This document shows, piece by piece, positions 11,113-47,468 of a stretch of DNA of 64,000 nucleotides. Origin of the DNA: Epithemia pelagica (lineage: Eukaryota > Protista > Bacillariophyta); assembly GCA_946965045.2 (NCBI GenBank), contig OX337230.1, positions 2,418,001-2,482,000 on the forward strand. The letters are read 5' to 3'. Numbering within the stretch: the first letter of the stretch is position 1; each line of letters begins with the position of its first letter. The notes below the pieces were generated by a model that saw only the letters and a program-made list of their open reading frames with translations, was not told the origin of the DNA and did not search any database. The translations under genes were made by a program, and so were the position numbers.

Positions 11113-12672
11113 ATGGTCGCAAGAGTAAACGCTGACAATTGCACATCAAACAAAAGCAGCGATGAACAGGAGGCGACGCAATTGAACTCCATCGACGAAA
11201 CTGGAAAATCAGGTGACGGTTCTCAACAAGCAGGACAAGACGAGGAGGTAAAAGAAGAGACTGGTTGTTCCGTCAAACCAATTTCGTCTCAAGAAAACAC
11301 GGATTGCGATTCGTCTACGTATCAAGAGAACGAGGGGACAAGCCCGGGGTTAGAGGAAGAGAGTGCCCCTCTGCTAGACTCATGCTGCAGCACTCGGACT
11401 GAAAGCTCTTGTGATCCAATCAAGGATTCCAGTGAACCGACCCCAGACACTCCAAATGACAAGAAATCCATGCAACAATCAGAATCGTTTGGGGAACAAG
11501 TCGATGTGGGCGTACAGGAACCTCCCGTTGGTGGTGTCGAACAAATTTTTTCCAACTTTGAAGTACATGAAGAAATTGTCTTTGAAGAGCCAAGGACGAT
11601 TTCGGTTTCGGAAAGGATTTTGTCGTTTTTTCGTGATGGTACGCGTCGCAAAGCAAGTTCCTCCGACATTGAGGCATGGATCAAGCTGTCCTTGACCTTG
11701 GATGGACGTGACAAACTCACCAAGGTGCTGCAATATGTGGCGAGGTTTCTCGCGTGGTCACTGCAGGGAACATTCAAGAACCAAGCCAAACGATTGGACG
11801 CCTTAAAATCGTCCTTAAGTAACGGGCGCAAAGCGTTCCGCCTGGGACGAACCTTGATGGAAGTACAGACACTTCGAACCATGGGATTACTGGAACGCTT
11901 GCGCATGCACTGGAAACAAATATCCTTGGAATCGGACATGGATTGGACTAGCAATGGCAATACAAGCTCGTGTAGGCAACAATCACCACTTCTACGAAAT
12001 CATGGCACAAGCAGAAGCTCTCTCATGCGACGATTATCCACCAATATTGGCTTGGACTACGAGAGCAACTTGGACCTCGTGAGAAAGGTCTTGCGTCAGC
12101 AATCATTTGTAATTGAACAAATTCGACGAATGCCATCTCGTATTTATGAAATGTCGTTTCTGGAACAAGACGACACGTCCCTCCCGCTGTGGCAAATGTG
12201 CTTGGCGGCGGTGAAACTGGTTTCAATGTCCTGTTACTACCTTGGAGACAATTTCTCGTTTCTATCCGCATCGGGTGTGCTGGATGACTTTTCAGCCAAA
12301 CAAGAAAAGCGGATATCAAAACGGAGAGAATTGACCAACTGGGCGAGCATTGTTGCCAACAGGGCTGATTTTGTTTCTGGTGTCGTTGGATTGATTCTTA
12401 GTTGGAGAACATATCGAGAATTTTGTCAAGAAGAACAAGACATGAACGAGGATGACGAGGCCGCACAGCAACGACGGAGAGAAAAACACTTTGGACTTGT
12501 GTTGTCTTTGATCAAGAATTCGTGCGACCTTTTAACGTTCACGAACCATGCGGGTGTAGATATCTGGAGACAAAGTGTCGGCTTTCCTCTAAATGAAGGC
12601 ATTTACTGTATAGCTGGCTTTGCCTCCGCATTGTCTGTCCTCTGCGCCAAATTTCCAATGCATGAGGGATAA
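11113..12672 (+). CDS. PEX11: Peroxisomal biogenesis factor 11 family protein with a long acidic N-terminal extension (519 aa)
   Basis: PEX11 signature LSLTLDGRDKLTKVLQYVARF...SSLSNGRKAFRLG and C-terminal LIKNSCDLL...GFASAL segment. Confidence 0.8.
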   Translation: MVARVNADNCTSNKSSDEQEATQLNSIDETGKSGDGSQQAGQDEEVKEETGCSVKPISSQENTDCDSSTYQENEGTSPGLEEESAPLLDSCCSTRTESSCDPIKDSSEPTPDTPNDKKSMQQSESFGEQVDVGVQEPPVGGVEQIFSNFEVHEEIVFEEPRTISVSERILSFFRDGTRRKASSSDIEAWIKLSLTLDGRDKLTKVLQYVARFLAWSLQGTFKNQAKRLDALKSSLSNGRKAFRLGRTLMEVQTLRTMGLLERLRMHWKQISLESDMDWTSNGNTSSCRQQSPLLRNHGTSRSSLMRRLSTNIGLDYESNLDLVRKVLRQQSFVIEQIRRMPSRIYEMSFLEQDDTSLPLWQMCLAAVKLVSMSCYYLGDNFSFLSASGVLDDFSAKQEKRISKRRELTNWASIVANRADFVSGVVGLILSWRTYREFCQEEQDMNEDDEAAQQRRREKHFGLVLSLIKNSCDLLTFTNHAGVDIWRQSVGFPLNEGIYCIAGFASALSVLCAKFPMHEG

Positions 12673-13275
12673 ATCATTTTTTCTCCTTGGCGTCGCCCAA
12701 GGAATCTGAACGCCAACATCAACTGACAGTGTATCTCCCACTTTACGTGCGAACTTGTGGTCACTAGGACTTAAACTACCATTATGTCCGACTAGGGTGA
12801 AACTGCCATTTTCATTTTTATAGCACACTATGTTGTTTGTGACACAATCCATTTTATCTGCTACATGTCGAAGTTGTAGATATCCGTTTATATCTTATCT
12901 ACTCCTGGTTATAGGACAAAGACTTGCCCACTCTTCCACACGCGAAGAACAGGCATTCCGGAATTACTGTCCGTAAGTACTGCAATGGGGGTCGTCCTCA
13001 GCCGCACTGCTCACCGTGTCGGATGCACCAATAACGAGCGTCACATCCGTGCCATCAAAGGCGGGATTGATCTCTTCCATTTCAAAATCCGGAACACCGG
13101 CTTCGGCTAGCAGGACATTCAATTGTCCGGGCGTGCGTCCTGCCACTGGATGAATTCCAAATCGGACCTTCTTTCCCGCTGCTTTCAGGTCCTTTGCAAT
13201 GTCTGCAATGGCAAACTGTGCTTGAGCTACAGCCAGTCCATAATCACCACTCTTCGCGTCGAGGAGTGCTTGCGT
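12479..13275. repeat. Segment B: inverted duplicate of 39411-40260 (PEX11 3' end + intergenic + NNT 3' end)
   Basis: The reverse complement aligns to 39411-40260, e.g. ACGCAAGCACTCCTCGACGC, GGAGTAGATA, GTGGTCACTAGGACTTAAACTACCATTATGTCCGA and GAGAAAAACACTTTGGACTTGTGTTGTC, with substitutions and deletions. Confidence 0.92.
12913..13275 (-). pseudogene. NNT: NAD(P) transhydrogenase domain III fragment (truncated, with deletions)
   Basis: [40 protein letters not shown](T)[41 protein letters not shown]. It has internal deletions relative to the intact copy, and the last CDS segment is missing. Confidence 0.93.
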
Positions 13276-34600: not shown

Positions 34601-35698
34601 CTCGTCGTGGTCCCCTTTGTCAAACCACCTCTTCTGCCTCCCATCCCCATCTCTGGTACAGAGACAACTTCCTCTGAAAGTGCTTTGATGTGCAGAATGA
34701 TTGACCGTTGGGTTGGTTATCATTGTCATCATTTGTCGGTTGTCGGCATTGACTGAGGATATCTTGGCGGGAGACTTCCAAGTTGGGTAAAAAATGAAGA
34801 AACATTGCGTGAATTGGAGGGGCGCAACGACAGAAATGAGATAGTCCTCATTGAAAAGTCATAGATTTTTGTATTTATGGTTGCACGTGACCCCAGAAAA
34901 CCATTAACACCGTTAGCTGGTGTTGTTCTGTAGGTTCCAAATCAGCACGCTTGGATTAGGCGTGTTGGCTGTTGGCATCAACGCCATCTTTGTGAAGCAA
35001 AAGGTTTCAACCGTCCGGAGAAAACAATCCAAGCTCCGCCACTGTTGAGTAAGATGGGTGCTTTTCGAAATGAGCCGCCAAAAGCTCCTGGCGTTTCTTG
35101 ACGACTGAGATGGTCTTCTCCATCATGGTGGTGCTGGTGGTGAGACCCGCTTGGTGTGTTTGGTTGGCCTCTGAACCTTGTCTGTTGTAGGACAATGAGA
35201 CGCCAGCTTCGTATCTGGTGGTCCTTCCTGCCTTCCTGACTTTTTTCGAGTTTTCCCGAGACCAATACGAGCAGTAGCTGCATGTAGTGCGCGCATGGCG
35301 AAAATCTAATTTTTGATCTTGTCAAGACTTACTCTCACTCCAATAGTACATGCGACATATACGAGCCAAAAATTCTCTCAAAACGACTCACAATTTTGTG
35401 CAGGACCCCGACGACCCAAATTTCAATGGATCTGTCATCGAACCATACAGTGCAATAGATGAAGAACTGAAGTATTGCACTGAAGTTTCCGATGACAAAT
35501 TCATTGAAAATTGACTGAGTTACAGTCTGCACAAAACCGATCATTGGAATTTCCCCAATTTTGGACCTGTCGGCATCAAATTCTTATTTAACAGGAAATC
35601 TTTTCTACATCTAGGCGCGCGAGTCCATGTCGCACCTGCACCAGCATCGCTTCAGGCACGCGTTGCCAGGAAAAACCGCTCGTATTGCGGGGTGTGAT

Positions 35699-35927
35699 TT
35701 TGGACAGGCAGCCGGTCGCACGTGTGACAATCGGGTGTCGTCGTCACCCTCGCGATTGAAACGCGAATCGGTACACACCAATCTACAGTCGGTGATCCAC
35801 CATCTGGTCCTTGTCATGCGAACGAACACTACGACTTCAAAATCTGTCGACCACGAGCCAATGAAAGGAGTCGCGACGGCAAACGAGGGCCAGCCGGCCT
35901 CGAAGAAAGATACCATCAAAGATCTCG
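35699..35927. repeat. Segment D': NNT upstream region, inverted duplicate of 40263-40361 + 47230-47341
   Basis: The reverse complement matches CGAGATCTTTGAT...GAAGTCGTAG at 40263-40361 and continues after copia-2 as GTAGTGTTCGTT-GCATGACAAGGACCAG...GCTGCCTGTCCAAA. Confidence 0.92.
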
Positions 35928-36085
35928 TCTCGTCGTCGTGTCGCCATCATCAGCCTCCATTTGCAAGAACACCGTTTCTCTCTCCACGAAAACGAGAATC
36001 TTGTACGAGAGACAGAACACGCTCGGTTCTCTCATTACACAGCCTCCAACGAGAAGACAACCTAAAAAAACAAAAGATTCAAGCC

Positions 36086-39000
36086 ATGAAGGTGTCCCTC
36101 ATCCATGGCCACAGCAACCTGTGGCTATTGGGTGGAACCTTGCTCGTGTGCCTAGTGGTCGATCCCTCTACCGCCTTGGCACCACCTTCCACCCTTTCCC
36201 GAACGGCGGCGTCATGGATCGCGACGCCTCATCATCTCAATCCTCGCATCTTGTCGTCCAAACAAAACAACAAGGCTCGAGGATCTTTGTATTCCGTGGT
36301 TCCCGAACGCCAAGAGTCCCTGTCTCCAGATGACAGCAAACAAGAGGAAGAAAACGAAGAAAGTAAAGTTGCGGTCGACCCCGACAAGGTTGTCTTGGAA
36401 TCCTTGTTTGAAGACGAAACCTCTTCCACGCTCTTGTTGGGGGAAGCCATTCCCTACAAGGACTTGACCATTGGTGTTTTGAAGGAAGACTTTGCCGGAG
36501 AAAATCGAGTCAGTCAAACGCCCGATTCGGTCCAGGGTCTCGTCAAGGCTGGATTCACGGTCGTTGTTCAAGCTGGAGGTACGTTTGTTCGAGCATTCCA
36601 CCAAACGTTGTTTGTTGATTTGCGCTTGTACAGTTCACATGTCTCTCTCACACCAAATCTCTGTGTGTGCGATGAATGATTCCAATCTCCATCCATGGTT
36701 GTGGACCGACCGTCAATGTGCTTTCCTGTCGAACAATGATACATTCTAAAAAACCAACCTTTCGGATTATATATCTTGCTTGAAACAATTACGAACACTC
36801 ATCGTCAACTCTCTTTCGTCGATCTACGCAGCGGGTGAAAAGGCTGGGTTCAGCGATGCTGCCTACGTCGATGTCGGTGCGGTTGTCTTGCAGGGAGAGC
36901 ATCAAATTTTTCAAGACGCTGACATTTTTACTCAAATTCGTCCTCCCTCCATGGAGGTGGTAGCCAAATTGGCAGGCAAAACATTGGTGAGCATGATCCA
37001 GCCCGCCTTGCATCCTGAGGTGTATGAGACCTTGACCGAACAAGGTACCAATGTCTTTGCTTTGGATTGTGTGCCTCGATTGTTGAGTCGAGGACAGGCC
37101 TTTGATACCCTGTCCAGTCAAGCCAATATTGCCGGATACCGATCCGTCGTGGAAGCTGCTCAAGCCTTTCCCCGTTTCTTGGCCGGTCAAATGACGGCCG
37201 CGGGGAAAGTTCCTCCCGCCAAGGTGTTGGTCTTGGGTGCCGGAGTGGCTGGATTGGCAGCCATTCAAGCCGCCAAAAACATGGGTGCCATTGTGCGAGC
37301 CTACGACGTGCGTCCTGTCACCAAGGAACAGGTCGAATCCATGGGTGCCACGTTTTTGGAAGTCTCCTACAAGGAAGATGGAAGCGGTGCCGGTGGCTAT
37401 GCCAAGGAAATGAGTGAGGAATACAAACGTGCACAAGCCCAGCTCATGTTGGAACAAGCCAAGGATGTCGATATCATTATAACGACTGCCCTCATTCCAG
37501 GTCGCAAGGCACCCGAATTGGTCAGCAATGAAATGTTGTCCTTGATGAAACCAGGATCCGTCTGTGTGGATTTGGCAGCAGCCAATGGAGGCAATGTGGC
37601 ACAAACGCAACCCGATGAAATTGTCACCACCGACAATGGCGTCAAGATTATTGGATACACCGATTTGCCTTCGCGGTTGCCCACTACGGCAAGCAACTTG
37701 TTTGCCAACAATGTCGCCAAGTTTATTCTCAGTATTGGTCCCCAAACAACCAAGGAAAAAGGTATCTTTCAAATTGACCTTCAAGATGACGCGGTTCAAA
37801 ATATGCTGATTTCCTACAATGGACAGGCTCGATGGCCCGATGAAATTACACCCTACACTCCACCTCCTCCACCCAAGTCTGCCTCACCACAAGAAGAGGA
37901 GACTCCCTTGTCGCCCGAAGAAATGTTGGCCTTGGCCAACGAACAACAAAAGCAAGTATTTGTTCGCAACACTGGAATGGCGAGTCTGGCTGCCATTGCA
38001 TTGGTCGCCTTTGGTTTCACCGCCGCGTCCGGATCCGACGGCACCAGCCATATGGACAGTGTTCATTTGTTGTCCACCTTTGCCTTGGCCGGAATTGCTG
38101 GGTATCAAGTGATTTGGGGTGTGGCCCCTGCCTTGCACTCTCCTCTCATGGCCGTGACCAATGCCATTAGTGGAATGACGGCCGTCGGGGGAATGTTGTT
38201 GTTGGCCAGTGGTGGTGGGTCGGAAACACTTATCCCGGACTCACCGGCTCATTGGATGGGGGCTATCGCCACTGCACTGTCCTTTATCAACATTGCCGGA
38301 GGATTCCTTGTGTCAGGAAAAATGTTGGATCTTTTTCGCAGACCGGACGATCCTCAAGACTTTTTCGAATTGTATGCCGCTCCTGTGGGTATTGTCTTGG
38401 CTGGTTTGGCCGCTGCAGCCTTCACAGCGACGGCTGGTGGAGATCCAAGTCTGGAAACCATGGCTGGTGCAGCAGCGGTAGCCTCGGCGATTTGTTGTAT
38501 CGCAGGAATTGCTGGATTGGCCCACCCCGAGAGTGCTCGTACCGGCAACGTGTTGGGAATGGCGGGTGTCACCTTTGGGTTGGCCGCCACTACGGCCGAA
38601 ATGTCGGTTATGCAAGGAGGACCTGTTGCGCAAGCTAGTATGACGGCATTCGAACAAGTCGGTCTCCTGGGAGGATTGGGAAGTGCCGTTGGTGCTTCTG
38701 TCGCATCCAAGGTTGGTCCCACGGAACTCCCACAAACGGTGGCGGCCTTTCACTCTTTGGTTGGTTTGGCGGCCATGGCGGGAGCGGCCGGTGAATTTCT
38801 AGGTGCCCCTGGTGGTCATTTGGCCGTTGGTACCCTTTCTGCCATTTACCTGGCCACGTGGATTGGAGGAATCACTTTTGCCGGGTCGGTGGTTGCTTTT
38901 GGCAAGCTTGCTGGATTGCTCAAATCTGCTCCTCTCCAATTGCCATTCCGCGATCCCCTCAACCTAGGTATGGTCATTACCAGTGCCTTGGGAATGGCTG

Positions 39001-39914
39001 CCTTTTTGAACCCAGGCCTTCTTGGTGCGCTGGGCGGTGACGCCGCTTCGGCGGTCCAACTCGGTAGTCTGGGAATGGTTGCCGCCCTCTCGTCAGTTCT
39101 GGGATGGCATTTGACGGCGAGCATTGGTGGTGCTGACATGCCTGTGGTGATCACCGTGTTGAACTCCTATTCAGGCTGGGCTCTCTGTGCAGAAGGCTTT
39201 CTTCTCAATAACCCTCTTTTGTCCCAAGTTGGTGCATTGATTGGATTTTCCGGTGCCATTTTGACCTGGATTATGTGCGAAGCCATGGGCCGTGATGTCG
39301 TTTCCGTCATTTTGGGAGGCGCAGGAACATCAACAGCACCTGCTATTTCTGGTGACGAGAATGCCATGATTCCTGAAGGAGAGGTGACGACGACTACCAC
39401 CGACGTGGTCACGCAAGCACTCCTCGACGCCAAGAATGTGATCATCACTCCTGGTTATGGACTGGCTGTAGCTCAAGCACAGTTTGCCATTGCAGACATT
39501 GCAAAGGACCTGAAAGCAGTGGGAAAGAATGTCCGATTTGGAATTCATCCAGTGGCAGGACGCATGCCCGGACAATTGAATGTCCTGCTGGCCGAAGCCG
39601 GTGTACCATACGATATGGTGTTTGAAATGGAAGAGATCAATCCCGACTTTGATAGCACGGATGTGACGCTCGTTATTGGTGCATCCGACACGGTGAGCAG
39701 TGCGGCTGAGGACGACCCCCATTGCAGCATTTACGGCATGCCTGTTCTTCGCGTGTGGAAGAGTGGACAAGTCTTTGTCCTAAAGCGTTCTATCGGCAAT
39801 ACAGGTTATGCTGGAATGCAGAATCCAATTCTGTTCAAGGACAATACACATGTTTTGTTGGGAGACGCCAAGGACAGTTGCGAAGCTCTTCGCACAGCCA
39901 TTCACAGCGCTTAG
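36086..39914 (+). CDS. NNT: Proton-translocating NAD(P) transhydrogenase, fused alpha-beta (dI-dII-dIII), 2 exons, 1191 aa, with bipartite presequence
   Basis: Exons 36086-36578 and 36832-39914 (GT-AG intron; [13 protein letters not shown]). Motifs IGVLKE...[69 protein letters not shown]. Confidence 0.97.
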
Positions 39915-40260: not shown

Positions 40261-40643
40261 GGCGAGATCTTTGATAGTATCTTTCTTCGAGGCCGGCTGT
40301 GCCCCCGTTTGCCGTTGCGAATCCTTTCATTGGCTCGTGGTCACAGATTTTGAAGTCGTAGTAAGAAAACCCGTCCGTTGGGCATACGGAGCACCGTCAT
40401 GGGTGCACGGGTACAAAAGTCATTCCAAACAAAGAAGTGAACTAAAATATAGGTTACAGAGTCACTACTCCCTATCTTCTCGATTTTCATACGTACGACA
40501 GACATACTTTCTTAGTCCCCTCAAACAGTACTCGATTCCTTTGAGAACTGTTTGCCATCCCAGTAGTAAGTGTATTCGGGCCAACTAGCCCAGGAAACCT
40601 CAAGACCTGCACAAAACCTCATAAATAGAGATGAGGAAAGGAC

Positions 40644-43600
40644 TCACTCTGGGGATCCATGATCATCAGTAATATCCCAAAGGACCAGACCCAACAAATG
40701 ATTGCGTTTCTGTCCTCCTGGAATCACCTTGGTGGCCAAATCGGCTGGATTATGCTGTGTGGGAATATGTGTAGTCAACAATTCACCCATGGCAACAGCT
40801 TCTCTGACAGCATGATAGCAAATAGAATTGGACTTCTTCTTCAGCGATGATTCCGGTTTCGATGTATTATGAATCACGGACATGTTGTCACCATAAACAT
40901 ATGTAGGACCAGACAACGGCACTCCCATCATCCGTAATTTGTAGCGTAGTCCCCTGACGGCCTCCATGCCCGTCTTCATTGCGACAAACTCAGCTCCAAA
41001 AACGGATGTTTCGATGGTCGCTTGTCGCTTGGTATACCACATAATAGGTGCCATATTCATAAAGATGAAGAATCCAGTTCTAGATCGCCGTACCATCTTG
41101 TCACCAGCATGATCCGAGTCAACATACAGCCGCAGATCCACCTCTTTACCACGTGCCTTTGGTGCATTCGGTGGAACTGCCTCCTTTACATCGCCGTAGA
41201 ACTCCTTCCAGTCGCAATCTTCACGAAATTCTCGGAGGTCTATCTCGGGATAGGTCGGATCAAATGCCATCCTGGCATTGTGCTTGATTTTCAAATAGGA
41301 ATACATATGGAATACTGCTTCCAAATGTCCTTGTCGTGGACTTGCCACTTGGGATGCTAACAATGATGTTTCGGTCATGATATCCACCCTTCCCAGTTCA
41401 ACCATCCATCTGAGGACGCCAATCTGGGACTGGTAGAATGACACCTCGTCCACATTCAGTTGATCTGTCACGTCAAGAACTGGGTCATATTCTGATGGGA
41501 ACGGAGTCGCCGCGCGTTTTGCAAGCTTGCGGCCGTTCCAAATACGTCTCAACATTCGAAACAGCTTCTTGTACATACTTGCTCGAACTTATAGCCCAAC
41601 TGACAACGGAATTGGGCATGGTCATGGGCTTAAGCTTCCCTCCAAGGTACATGTCAGGATTTCCGATCGAGCCCGGCTTCATAGGGAAGAAATGATCTAA
41701 CTCGTGTAACATCGCAGCCGCATCATGCGATATAGCCAAGACATCGTCTACGTACAGCAATACATAGGCGTAGTACTTGTGACCGTCACTCGGACGTGTC
41801 ATAGGCTTCATCCACAAGTCTCGATCAGCACCCAAGCACGGATCGTACCCAAGAGTTCTCATACAACTCGCAAGGTGGTTGCGGAAGCTTGCACCGGCAC
41901 TCTTTAACCCATACAACGCTCGTACAATATATGCACGCTTCCCAGCGTTGGACCCGAACTCGGGGCCCAGTACAGTCCAGATTTTCTCACTGTTCGGCGC
42001 AGTTAAATAAGCATTCTTGATGTCGGACGTTTTAACCTCTAGGTCGTTGAGAGCGGCAATAGTGAGGGCAATACGAACACTTTCTCGAGATACAACACTG
42101 GCATAAGTCAATGTTGCTGGTGCCTCTGTTGTGTGTCCGCCCGCTACAAACCGTGCTTTTCTCCTGAAATCTTCCATTTTTACGTCGAAAACCATGTGGC
42201 ATCGGATCTCCTGGAAGCCAGGAGCTGGTTTCTCGTCGTCTTCCATCAACTTGAACGCCACTCGAACAGCTTCCATCTCTTTCTCGATGGCCTTTCGCCA
42301 CAAGTCGTTGCCGTTCCTTCTGTCAAGTTCGTATGCTTCGGCAACAGTCTTGGGGATTTCGATCCCAAACTTGTGCGTCCGCTTGTGGTAGCGGCTATTG
42401 ACGGCGGCGAGTATCCGATCTCGTCGTCGGAGGAATTTATTCACCCACCAATCAAACGCTGGCTCATTTTCAATCTGCTTTGCGACGGCGTACTCCGCCA
42501 CTTCAATCGGATTTGATTCCTTCAGTCCAGCCAGGCGTTCCCAGGACGTTGACCCGTCGCGCCACTGGACGCACAACTCCCACCCTTTCGTCGTCTTCTT
42601 CTTGTGCTTCCGCCCTCGGACAACGACATGGCGGTTATCGTGGTCGACAGCGGCTTTGGTCTTGCGATGATCAACGATGCTGTCCAGCAACAAGAATTGG
42701 TTTCCCTCAGCATCGCACTGCGCATACATATTTTCCGCGATGACGTTCGCGGCATACTCTGACGTCTCGCCGTCTGGAAACTCGACAACATATACTCTCG
42801 AGTCTAGAATCGGGTTGTGGGACGACGTCCCCTTGAGACGGCCATCACTGGTCTTGGACCGTCTTTTCACCTTGCCCGTCACCATTGCATCACCCTTCGG
42901 CAACAAGACGTCAGCTCCAACGTAGTTGTCGTAGGTGTCTGGTGTGATGTCATCAATGTCGGGTGCAATCGGTGGCTTGGGGTCATCGTCGTCTTCATAC
43001 GCCTCGTAGGTCGGCGTTTCCACATCAACTAGACCATCGTAGTCTTCGATTTTAGCTACACCGCCTAACTTCTCGTTGACCTTACTCGTGTAGTCTTTCC
43101 TCTTCTCTATTTCAGTCGGGTCACGGATTTCGTCGTCCGTCAGATGTCGGTAGGTCGAGCGAATCTTGATCATTCCTGACTCGGCTAGGATCTTAATTGC
43201 ATGTGCGGGTCCCATGTCCGTCGCAGGACCTAGGTACCTACCCAGTTTCTCCTTGTCTTCCGGGTAGTTGGCCGCTGAGTCGTAGTAATAAACCCAGTCG
43301 TACCACCCATATCCAGCCAAGAGTGAAATGTCGAAGGTCTCCCCGTACATTGCCGTTTCCGGGACTTGACCTGACAGCTCGAAATTACTATGACATGTAG
43401 CCGATCTGATATAGGCTTCCAACTCGAGGCAATGATCCCACAATACCTTAGGAGATTTAGTTGAGACCATTTTCCGTCCAGTACCACGCTTCAACTCCCT
43501 AATTGCACTCTCAGCCGCATTTGCCCATGGAGTATAGGGCTCCAACTGTTTCACTCGACAACCAGCCTCTCTAGACTTCTTCCTGAACTTGCCCTTGACC

Positions 43601-44700
43601 TGTTCCGCGGCACCGTCCATGATTAGTTCCGGTGGACGGCCTTCCCTCTGGAGCAACAACGACAAAGCTTCGTGTGCATCGCCTTTCGAGGCCAGAGGGT
43701 ACGCTCTAGTCCATCCATTCCTTGCCGTGAAGACTTGGGCACAAGTATTACCCAGCCTAGACTTCACCTTCGAAAACATAGTGTCCGTGAATAAGGGATG
43801 AGGCAATGGCCGGTATCGGTGAAACCGGTCGTTCGTCGTGAACCTCTTGGTCAGAGGGTTCAATGTGGTACGTAGACCACGTTGCGTCGTCACTCGAAGG
43901 GTATCCGCTGCACGTTCCAATCCACATCCCCATCGACGTGCCAAAGTCTTGGCATCGATAGCTTTTCCAGAAGGGGTAGTTTGTGTTACGGAAAGAGTCG
44001 CCACGCGTGCTTGCAGGGCAGTCGCGAAGCATGCGGTTTCCGACGATCGCGAATCAGAAAGCAAAGTCGTGAAAGGGTCATTGGGTCCCCTTGAGCGAAC
44101 GGTGGAAATCGATCGTTGGAGGGCCGCTCGGGCCGACATTTCATCCCGAGCGAAAGAGTCATTCTGGGGGTCCCACGGCGGGTCAGGACTAGTCAAATCA
44201 AAGCGACGTTATGAAGCATATTCATCGGAAGTGGGGGTCCTTGTAGGGAAATAGGAAGTGACACCACATAAATCAAGGGGTATCACAAAATCCTCATCGT
44301 CCTGATCTTTCAGGACCAGTGCGTGTGTCTTATTGTCGGGATTATCGGTCAAGAATTTCGGTTGGTCCGAAACTTGCACGTCATTCATCCACAACTGCAT
44401 AGGGCACAGGAGGTTGTGAGTAAGCGATGGTATATAAATGGCCTGGTTCACGAGTAGGATCAATACTTCACCGGTATCGGGGCAATCATAAGCTAGAGCC
44501 GCACTTATAGTCTTGCAACTCTTGTGAACCACGCCCTGAGAAGAATCATATCCCTTGACATCCACAGGGCGGCCATAGTCCTGTACAACCATCGCAGACC
44601 TTCCAACAACACACGTGTCCGCATGACTATCAAGCTCGGTACGAGACTCGCCCTCGTCGGACGTGTCAACCGCACCGACACGCACTGAGCGGACCACCGC
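40644..44700 (-). pseudogene. Pol of copia-2, in frame with gag after a UGA; internal TAA at 44209-44211 and a frameshift near 41540
   Basis: Protease TELDSHADTCVVG; integrase TDTMFS / LIMDG / ANAAESAIRE; RT CHMVFDVKM, RALYGLK, YVDD; RNase H YVDSDH, VFGAEF, YGDNMSV, NPADLATK. Confidence 0.92.
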
Positions 44701-46209
44701 TCATTTTCGTGATTTCTTCTGGCGGGTTAGCGCCGGATTGTCGCGATTCGACTCGGGCTTGCGCTTTCCCGCAGGCTTGGCATCATCATCAGAACTATCG
44801 GACGATGAGTCATTGCCGCTGGCTCGAGATGGATCGCGCAATGGTGGCAAGCTCATTGAATTCTTCGCGAGAGCGGACAGGGCAGCGATGTTCCTCTGAA
44901 ACTTCTTGGAAAAGAGCTTCATCTCTTTGGGCTTGCTGGAATCGCCCTTGCCCGTGCGATTCTCCCGCATTTCCTTCAACTTCTTGCGCTGGGCGTGAGA
45001 AAGCTTCTGGTATTCGTCTTTCTTATAATATCGGTCTTCTACACCGACACTAGCTTTCCCCCCAGACTTAGTCTTACCAGAATTAGAATCAGTCTTGGTA
45101 CTGATACTCGATACTTGAGACTGACTAGCCGATGGGCGCTGTGCTAAGAAATCCTTAAACAAGGAGACGGCACGGGTGAAATCGGCTTGTAGGGAATCAT
45201 CCGACATGATTCGCGTCTTCACCGCTTGAAATTGGTCGGTCTTGATTCCGTCCATCAGATGCCGAACCTTAGAACGGTCATCGATGCCAGGATGTACGCC
45301 CTGCTGGCGTAACCCTTCTAAGATCGCGTGCTGATTCACGTGAATCTTACAGTATTTCTCGAAGTTGAACCGCTTATGTTCACCGTTGTAACTCGTGTTC
45401 ATAAGTTTCCGTTCAGCTTCGTTGGCCAAATTGTTCGCGTTGTTCGGCCCTAAGTAATGGTCAAACAAGGCTTGATAAGCCGCTCGCCCGTCGCGATTTC
45501 GGCTCGCCTTGCGGATGTAGGTAGAACAATCCATCCGTTCACACATAGCGGACAAGCGGATCCAAACCTTGGCCCGATCCTGCAAGTACTGACGGGTAAA
45601 GCCGTCGTTCGGTCCGTTTCCAACACGGTGACGAGCGCGTGCGATCATCTCAGCCTCGTCGGACTCAAATCCACCTTGCGGGTCAGCTCCGGGGAATTCG
45701 TCCGTCCGTATCACATACGCCAAAGGTATACCGGACGTGCCTCGGCACTCGGCGAAATACTCCTTAATCAACTCGATGTTCCGCGGCCAATCACGATTGT
45801 CGAGCTCGGGTGCTTCCGGATCATCGTGCATGGTCTCATATTCTTTGAGGTCTCGCATAGGGCGAATGTTCGCCATCGTCAAATCGTTCGGCGTGGTGGC
45901 CCGATCGATGCGGATACGGTGGCGGACAAAATAACATGCCAACTTGAGATTCGTCTCGGCTAGGATAGAAACTTCAAAGCCTGGATTAGGGACAGGCGGC
46001 GGAGCTGCCACTCCTGCCGCGGCGGCAGGAGGAGCTTGGACACCACCGGGGCGACGGACGGCCTTGCAGAGATTGATGACGCCGTCGTCGTCCAAGTCGC
46101 GAAGATCTTCGATCGAGGAGAGTCCTTGGCGGTCCACAAGGTACTGGGATGCCGGGTTGGAGAACTGGAGGCGGATGAACGCCTGACGCATTGCAGCTGG
46201 AGCGGCCAT
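44701..46209 (-). CDS. Gag of copia-2 (502 aa)
   Basis: Intact ORF from MAAPAAMRQ containing RRPGG, RDWPRNIE..EYF...GTSGIPLAYVIR, RDGRAAY.ALFDHYLG, FEKY and EDRYY..EY..LS, ending KKSRK-TGA. Confidence 0.85.
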   Translation of the reverse strand: MAAPAAMRQAFIRLQFSNPASQYLVDRQGLSSIEDLRDLDDDGVINLCKAVRRPGGVQAPPAAAAGVAAPPPVPNPGFEVSILAETNLKLACYFVRHRIRIDRATTPNDLTMANIRPMRDLKEYETMHDDPEAPELDNRDWPRNIELIKEYFAECRGTSGIPLAYVIRTDEFPGADPQGGFESDEAEMIARARHRVGNGPNDGFTRQYLQDRAKVWIRLSAMCERMDCSTYIRKASRNRDGRAAYQALFDHYLGPNNANNLANEAERKLMNTSYNGEHKRFNFEKYCKIHVNQHAILEGLRQQGVHPGIDDRSKVRHLMDGIKTDQFQAVKTRIMSDDSLQADFTRAVSLFKDFLAQRPSASQSQVSSISTKTDSNSGKTKSGGKASVGVEDRYYKKDEYQKLSHAQRKKLKEMRENRTGKGDSSKPKEMKLFSKKFQRNIAALSALAKNSMSLPPLRDPSRASGNDSSSDSSDDDAKPAGKRKPESNRDNPALTRQKKSRK

Positions 46210-47468
46210 GGTAATCAAAAACAACAATCAACTCTTAACTTCTTGAAACACTTCCTCAAAAGTGAGGTTTCCAAGACGAGTTTTGCCATGATTTTAATCC
46301 ATTACCTACGTAGAACCACTACTGGCTTGCACACAATCCTTGATTGTTGCTCAAAGTCGGTCGTGCCAGACCTAACCCACATGATCTTTGGCCCTAATTG
46401 GCTAGATCCACATAGGAGCCCGGAAAAGTCTTTTCGTCGGTTCCACAAGACACCCGAACCACGTCTAGGTATATTTTGTCCTGCAGTGAAAGGCCTCACA
46501 TGGAGCTAAGCTCATGTGCTCTCGGCCAGAGGGATAACAAACCGCAAAATGTGAGACAAGTCCCAAACGGTTGCGATGCGACACTGTACTTATTCCAAAA
46601 TTCAGCACTGTGCAACAATGAGTACCCCCCCTCCGTTGAGAAGGCTGTTTCGGACACATGCCCCCATTTCATCCACATGAAGACTGGTCCCAGGAATATT
46701 CTCCGGACCATTTCCCAGAGTAAAATGCGAATCACACATATAACTGGTTTTGGGATGCGTTCTGATCTCGAATTCCGCAACCATGGCGGATCTGGTTCAC
46801 TGGGATGGATCCAGTAGGGAAGACCGTCGCCTTTCCCCCAATCTGCGCACCTTTTCGCAGACAACGGTAGCGCCAAACAATAGTAACGTACCATTATCAT
46901 TGTGCCTGCACGAGCCCATTCACAGGTGCAATAGGTCAACCAATGATCCCCGACAGTTGGGTTATTTCTGTCGGTTTGCCTTATAGGCTTGGGGCATTAC
47001 GCCAACGGTCGCAGCCATCTGTCCAGGCATTGGACCGTCTACTTCCATGTTATTGACCAGTTTGGGTCTGATAAACTAAGAAAACCCGTCCGTTGGGCAT
47101 ACGGAGCACCGTCATGGGTGCACGGGTACAAAAGTCATTCCAAACAAAGAAGTGAACTAAAATATAGGTTACAGAGTCACTACTCCCTATCTTCTCGATT
47201 TTCATACGTACGACAGACATACTTTCTTAGTAGTGTTCGTTTGCATGACAAGGACCAGCTGGTGGATCACCGACTGTGGATTGGTGTGTAGTGATTCGCG
47301 CCTCAATCGCGAACCCATGTGCGACCGGCTGCCTGTCCAAACCCATCCACATCACCGTTTCCGAAAAACTTGAAAAAACACTGGAAGGATACCCTGATGG
47401 GTCTCATTGTTCGTCCTTCCGAAGGTACAACAGACAAGGTTCTGTGGTTGGGGATTGTCCGTTTACAA

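Follow-up and report, generated by a model that had tools for sequence, protein, structure and literature searches.

The 64,000-nt window analysed here (Epithemia pelagica, GenBank assembly GCA_946965045.2, contig OX337230.1, positions 2,418,001 to 2,482,000 of the forward strand; all coordinates below are positions in this window) carries on its plus strand a two-exon gene for an NAD(P) transhydrogenase (NNT). The exons, 36086–36578 and 36832–39914, are joined into a coding sequence of 3576 nt that is in frame, ends in its only stop codon and encodes a protein of 1191 residues. An initial annotation had read the N-terminus of this protein as a plastid-type bipartite presequence rather than a mitochondrial one, and it is this reading that is assessed below. 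The gene is composed of the following parts:

36038–36085, plus strand: minimal 5′ untranslated region (UTR), beginning where the RNA-type contig of run X6 begins.
36086–36175, plus strand: predicted signal peptide, residues 1–30, with an 11-residue n-region, a 14-residue h-region and the c-region DPSTA.
36167–36184, plus strand: motif of the ASAFAP type, STA/LAP (the slash marks the cut); predicted signal-peptidase cleavage between 36175 and 36176, which would expose Leu31.
36176–36304, plus strand: transit-peptide-like domain, residues 31–73, without Asp or Glu and ending at SLYSVVPE.
36305–36448, plus strand: acidic linker, residues 74–121, which joins the presequence to domain I; a G>C polymorphism at 36305 makes residue 74 either E or Q.
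36449–36578, plus strand: beginning of the NAD(H)-binding domain I, which matches AlaDh_PNT_N at profile positions 1–35; exon 1 ends in phase 1.
36579–36831, plus strand: intron of 253 nt, with GT at 36579 and AG at 36830–36831; removed in the RNA-type contigs.
36832–39914, plus strand: exon 2 including the stop codon, with the remainder of domain I, membrane domain II and the NADP(H)-binding domain III.
37143–37835, plus strand: AlaDh_PNT_C, within exon 2.
38070–38342, plus strand: PNTB_4TM, within exon 2.
38469–39893, plus strand: PNTB including domain III, within exon 2.

The intron splits the Pfam domain AlaDh_PNT_N, of which profile positions 1–35 are matched from exon 1 and positions 37–136 from exon 2, and joining 36578 to 36832 restores the domain I motif. 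Splicing and transcription were followed with contigs from public runs placed on 35400–37400. In run X6, which comes from the same organism as the DNA and for which the kind of library is not on record, the spliced joint was covered at a depth of 235, as compared to 9.5 for the intron-containing form, and the same joint was present in a contig of the metatranscriptome run X1. An X6 contig spanning 36038–36578 at depth 191 covers the ATG at 36086, from which the initial annotation had the protein start. A search for ATG in every frame of 36000–36085 found none, and the start of the contig fits a 5′ UTR of approximately 50 nt. The gene is intact and expressed.

All profiles expected of the enzyme were matched, with E values of 1e-08 and 2.3e-19 for the exon 1 and exon 2 parts of AlaDh_PNT_N, 2.4e-69 for AlaDh_PNT_C, 2.9e-27 for PNTB_4TM and 2.3e-159 for PNTB, the latter over profile positions 3–454 of 456. 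Mouse mitochondrial NNT (6QTI) gave a single collinear alignment over residues 96–1080 with 875 bits, which took in the alpha-beta linker and the 11-residue proton-channel segment, whereas the matches to E. coli PntB and PntA reached 422 and 345 bits, respectively. A Kyte-Doolittle scan over 19 residues yielded an unreliable helix count for the Gly/Ala-rich helices of this protein, and the mouse alignment was relied on instead. The full-length Pfam domains together with the collinear alignment argue for an intact enzyme, and the protein is on these grounds assigned as a complete single-chain alpha-beta (dI-dII-dIII) proton-translocating NAD(P) transhydrogenase (EC 7.1.1.1) of a raphid pennate diatom. 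Its transhydrogenase and proton-pumping activities are predicted from sequence conservation, for example from that of the proton-channel segment aligned to the mouse enzyme.

Diatom plastid presequences combine a signal peptide, an 'ASAFAP' motif across the cleavage site and a transit peptide that is hydroxylated, has a net positive charge and contains few negatively charged residues (PMC4329603). The translation from 36086 agreed exactly with the N-terminal residues quoted in the initial annotation, and the succession described there, of a signal peptide, LAP and an acid-free stretch, was recovered as residues 1–30, Leu31-Ala-Pro and 43 residues without Asp or Glu. The n-region of the signal peptide carries one Lys, and residues 1–30 contain in total one Lys and one Asp. 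In a rule-based reading the h-region, residues 12–25, is uncharged and hydrophobic (mean Kyte-Doolittle hydropathy of 2.82 over 9 residues) and the c-region DPSTA places Ser at −3 and Ala at −1. A mitochondrial matrix presequence would be amphipathic and positively charged and would have no long hydrophobic core, whereas residues 12–25 constitute such a core and bear no charge. The first 20 residues after Ala30 comprise six Ser/Thr, one Arg, two His and no Asp/Glu; the first acidic residue, Glu74, is found at +44. Plastid transit peptides are nearly devoid of negative charges in their first 15 positions (PMC12136025; PMC4329603), unlike proteins of the periplastidial compartment (PPC), which show early negative charges and lack the characteristic residue at +1 (PMC12136025). 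In ASAFind, F, Y, W or L at +1 is a hard-wired requirement of the high-confidence class (PMC12136025), and Leu31 is one of these accepted residues.

The presequence was then compared with those of other diatoms. The 120 best matches listed in a word search with exon 2 were diatom plastid-type orthologues and one protein of the bolidophyte Triparma, at 60–100% identity; identity to more than 100 diatom proteins was 68–86%. The survey set consisted of 76 orthologues with an initial Met and a length of 1090 residues or more. A hydrophobic N-terminus and a small residue at −1, followed at +1 by F (54), W (13), Y (1) or L (2), were found in 70 of the 76. The orthologue signal peptides had a median length of 21, and the next 20 residues contained on average 0.24 acidic residues. 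Among the remaining six, P0014 and P0016 had no signal peptide and look like truncated 5′ models, and four had a signal peptide below the heuristic threshold. Cleavage-site motifs in individual diatoms were as follows:

Phaeodactylum tricornutum: SQA/FSPP.
Fistulifera: TQA/W.
Cylindrotheca: SSG/FAP.
Cyclotella: CGG/F.
Nitzschia Nitz4: MEA/F.

In the survey as a whole, a plastid-type presequence is near-universal among the diatom orthologues.

A log-odds matrix covering positions −5 to +20 was built from 68 distinct orthologue segments, with the Epithemia pelagica protein excluded. Its best site in this protein was 30/31, that is STA/LAP, with 14.8 bits, compared to a leave-one-out median of 14.7 bits in the family. 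Shuffled N-termini scored −1.6 ± 4.7 bits, 0.2% of them reaching 14.8 bits, and the maximum in the mature protein was 3.0 bits. Taken with the recurrence of the layout in the survey set, the matrix corroborates the fit to the diatom ASAFAP-type pattern that had been proposed for this gene. Cleavage at AAS/W (43/44) was considered as well; it scored 11.4 bits, but lies 18 residues past the hydrophobic core and is an unlikely signal-peptidase site. The claim that Leu is allowed at +1 holds under the ASAFind rule and also within the family, where P0010 and P0012 carry SGA/LAP, aligned column for column with the QA/WAP of close relatives. Since L and W share this column in close orthologues, Leu can be regarded as a naturally tolerated +1 variant in the diatom NNT family.

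Comparison over shorter evolutionary distances gave a similar picture. In a related species, whose protein is 86% identical in its mature part, exon 1 has no detectable DNA similarity to the Epithemia pelagica exon, yet it encodes a signal peptide and the site SCNA/FGLT with 19.9 bits. Divergence of exon 1 with its features kept would be expected of a targeting peptide selected for features and not for sequence. In a second assembly of the same species (L003), 99.67% identical, the presequence is identical and the sole difference, E74Q, falls just beyond it. The boundary SLYSVVPE resembles the pattern [LI][YF][SA][ST]V..[DE] of many orthologues, other examples of the boundary being SIYATVEDE and RLFSTLDK. 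Many diatom orthologues (P0003–P0098) have after this boundary motif, and before domain I, an acidic stretch of 30–50 residues that is absent from mammalian NNT. The boundary motif, which here takes up residues 67–121 (36284–36448) together with the acidic stretch, may mark a stromal processing site.

We consider it quite probable that the precursor of Epithemia pelagica NNT bears a bipartite plastid presequence, from which we infer import into the plastid. Residues 1–30 would direct the nascent chain via Sec61 into the lumen of the endoplasmic reticulum (ER), which is continuous with the outermost plastid membrane, and cleavage by signal peptidase after Ala30 would expose Leu31. The acid-free, Ser/Thr-rich and positive stretch 31–73 would then mediate passage over the three inner plastid membranes and would probably be removed near the conserved boundary SLYSVV/PE. 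The enzyme would finally reside in a plastid membrane, with domains I and III in the stroma. The most plausible site is the thylakoid, because no other membrane of the plastid has a large proton gradient with the polarity required; for the thylakoid location as such we see about an even chance. Flow of H+ from lumen to stroma would be coupled to the reaction NADH + NADP+ → NAD+ + NADPH, and the reverse would be possible with excess NADPH.

Several points have to be set against this assignment. Both the signal peptide and its cleavage site were assigned by rules and by a matrix derived from orthologue N-termini. The cleavage sites in the orthologues were themselves placed by a heuristic, which looks for an aromatic residue or Leu after a small residue downstream of the hydrophobic stretch; the tally of F and W at +1 is therefore partly built in, although the presequence pattern is obvious from the orthologue N-termini even without the heuristic. 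Leu is rare at +1, occurring in 2 of 70 orthologues (Y in 1 of 70), and lowers the matrix score by 1.6 bits. As to the start codon, the X6 contig bears out that ATG 36086 lies within transcribed sequence, but contigs cannot fix the transcript start, and no stop interrupts the frame over the 157 codons upstream of this ATG. Experimental localisation of any diatom NNT was not found in the searchable literature, also when the P. tricornutum orthologue (XP_002186457 / B5Y5F4) was searched by accession. Finally, the data do not separate the thylakoid from the inner envelope, nor do they fix the direction of the reaction.

The rarity of Leu at +1 leads to the alternative that the signal peptide is real, but that with Leu in place of Phe or Trp the protein halts in the ER and secretory system or in the PPC and never arrives at the stroma or thylakoid. 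In support of this, PPC and plastid proteins differ mainly at +1 (PMC12136025). Against it, Leu is among the four residues of the ASAFind high-confidence rule and alternates with W in one alignment column among close orthologues, as described above. PPC presequences are moreover negatively charged early, while here no negative charge occurs for 43 residues, and neither the ER nor the PPC would seem to offer an obvious energised membrane or substrate pool for a proton-coupled transhydrogenase. We regard arrest in these compartments as improbable.

Less probable still is a start of translation at one of the upstream in-frame ATGs, at 35627, 35816 or 35861, in which case the hydrophobic segment would be buried behind an Arg/Ser-rich extension of 75–153 residues that could act as a mitochondrial or dual-targeting presequence. 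The upstream open frame runs back to a stop at 35612, and openness over 157 codons was equalled by only 0.02% of shuffles of the region. Run X6, on the other hand, gave no RNA-type contig upstream of 36038, and in the related species a stop codon interrupts the frame about 9 codons before the first ATG. Such an extension was found in none of the 76 full-length orthologues. The stretch 35750–35927 is a copy of a repeat that is also present, inverted, downstream of the gene, and 35400–35680 and 35802–35935 draw short, high-depth, mismatched contigs with loose ends. The upstream open frame may be an effect of the composition of repeat-derived DNA. The opposite strand is also open at 35611–35919, in an ORF overlapping the upstream frame. 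The frame 35615–36085 was rejected as coding on account of its lack of RNA-type cover, its lack of conservation in the related species and its overlap with repeats.

The least credible possibility is that the protein is a conventional mitochondrial NNT whose N-terminus resembles a plastid signal fortuitously. In its favour, the protein has the architecture of mammalian mitochondrial NNT, which is also its best solved relative, and databases automatically name the P. tricornutum orthologue 'NAD(P) transhydrogenase, mitochondrial'. Against it, the 14-residue uncharged hydrophobic core with its −3/−1 site points to a signal peptide, where a mitochondrial presequence would be amphipathic. About 70 independent orthologues moreover show the pattern although their presequences are unalignable, and a separate mitochondrial paralogue, NITZ4_001957, has been reported in Nitzschia Nitz4 (PMC9292941).

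Plastid targeting of a diatom NNT by a bipartite presequence, the reading we prefer, is not new. It has already been published as a prediction for the orthologue NITZ4_000738 of Nitzschia sp. Nitz4, and the Epithemia pelagica gene is an ordinary member of a known group. In full text and in the supplements of the papers on ASAFind, on the organelle proteome of T. pseudonana and on Nitz4, the Nitz4 prediction was the sole statement found on localisation of a diatom NNT. NITZ4_000738 was predicted to be a plastid transhydrogenase, probably of the thylakoid, which would reduce NADP+ via a proton gradient driven by ATP hydrolysis (Onyshchenko et al. 2021, PMC9292941). This protein (P0035 in our survey) shares 72% identity with that of Epithemia pelagica over 100% of exon 2 and contains the same four Pfam domains. 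It shows the same layout, with a signal peptide followed by MEA/F, and the same proton-gradient-driven supply of plastid NADPH is proposed for both. It differs in having Phe at +1 where Leu is found here and in its length, 1115 residues compared to 1191, the acidic linker being longer in Epithemia pelagica. Nitz4 is non-photosynthetic, whereas the lineage of Epithemia pelagica belongs among the photosynthetic raphid pennates; localisation is predicted in both.

A transhydrogenase of a complex plastid has been localised experimentally in Plasmodium berghei, where NTH (PBANKA_1317200) was found in the apicoplast and the crystalloid (Saeed et al. 2020, PMC7054674). It resembles the diatom protein in being a membrane-bound transhydrogenase with signal and transit peptides, in its association with a complex plastid of the red lineage and in its proposed role as organelle NADPH source (PMC7054674). 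P. berghei NTH, encoded by a single gene, is however a beta-alpha fusion (dIIa-dIII-dI-dIIb), whereas the diatom protein is an alpha-beta fusion and mammalian-like. Because of these different fusions, the plastid recruitments in Plasmodium and in diatoms look independent. With mammalian mitochondrial NNT (mouse, PDB 6QTI and 6S59) the diatom protein has in common the order dI-dII-dIII, the linker, the segment with the proton-channel histidine and a conserved dIII. Instead of a matrix presequence its N-terminus forms a predicted ER signal and plastid transit peptide, and about 48 additional residues, acidic in character, lie ahead of dI.

Synechocystis PntAB is reportedly located in the thylakoid. 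The cyanobacterial enzyme would be a functional analogue, as a transhydrogenase in an oxygenic photosynthetic compartment, but it is made of two separate subunits, in contrast to the eukaryotic-type fusion of the diatom protein. The study of Synechocystis PntAB by Kamarainen et al. 2017 is cited in PMC7133116. Judging by its better match to the fused mammalian enzyme than to E. coli PntB and PntA, diatom NNT does not look like a direct cyanobacterial inheritance.

The surroundings of the gene are rich in repeats. Inverted copies of a repeat of approximately 180 nt flank it, at 35750–35927 and, in two parts, at 40263–40362 and 47230–47312, with 92–94% identity. This repeat draws high-depth short contigs in a DNA run and is for this reason probably a dispersed family. 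A full-length copia-type LTR retrotransposon, 40363–47229, sits within the downstream repeat copy and begins 449 nt 3′ of the NNT stop codon. Its long terminal repeats (LTRs), 40362–40516 and 47077–47231, measure 155 nt each and are 100% identical. The second assembly of this species lacks the element, and an overlap of 5 nt at the junction resembles a target-site duplication; the insertion is young and polymorphic. On the minus strand, at 12479–13275, the 3′ end of the NNT gene is partially duplicated; the copy corresponds to residues 1025–1148 with about 84–87% identity. With a frame break near 12960–12967 and without the last 43 codons, after which follows a diverged 3′ flank matching up to 40260, this duplicate looks like a pseudogene fragment. 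In the related species (ENA ERZ25042306) the NNT gene is found on two contigs, L001 and L002, which have near-identical flanks and are probably haplotypes; genes with PEX11 and cyclin domains follow downstream of NNT.

To our knowledge, diatom plastids lack an oxidative pentose-phosphate pathway. The source of NADPH in the dark and the ATP/NADPH balance under light are live questions for these organelles, and one possible answer would be a plastid transhydrogenase coupled to protons. This answer has already been proposed for non-photosynthetic Nitzschia (PMC9292941), and the Epithemia pelagica orthologue opens no new question; it contributes a further orthologue, a gene model that has been checked and a naturally occurring Leu at +1. 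A wider proposal would be that alpha-beta NNT is a plastid enzyme universal to diatoms, that its recruitment was independent of that of the apicomplexan beta-alpha NTH of the apicoplast, and that it acts in the thylakoid as a reversible valve. NADPH production would be powered by the proton gradient in the dark or in low light, and in excess light protons would be pumped into the lumen at the expense of NADPH. As a whole we hold this proposal to be unlikely; if true, the reversible thylakoid valve would be an unrecognised component of ATP/NADPH balancing in diatoms.

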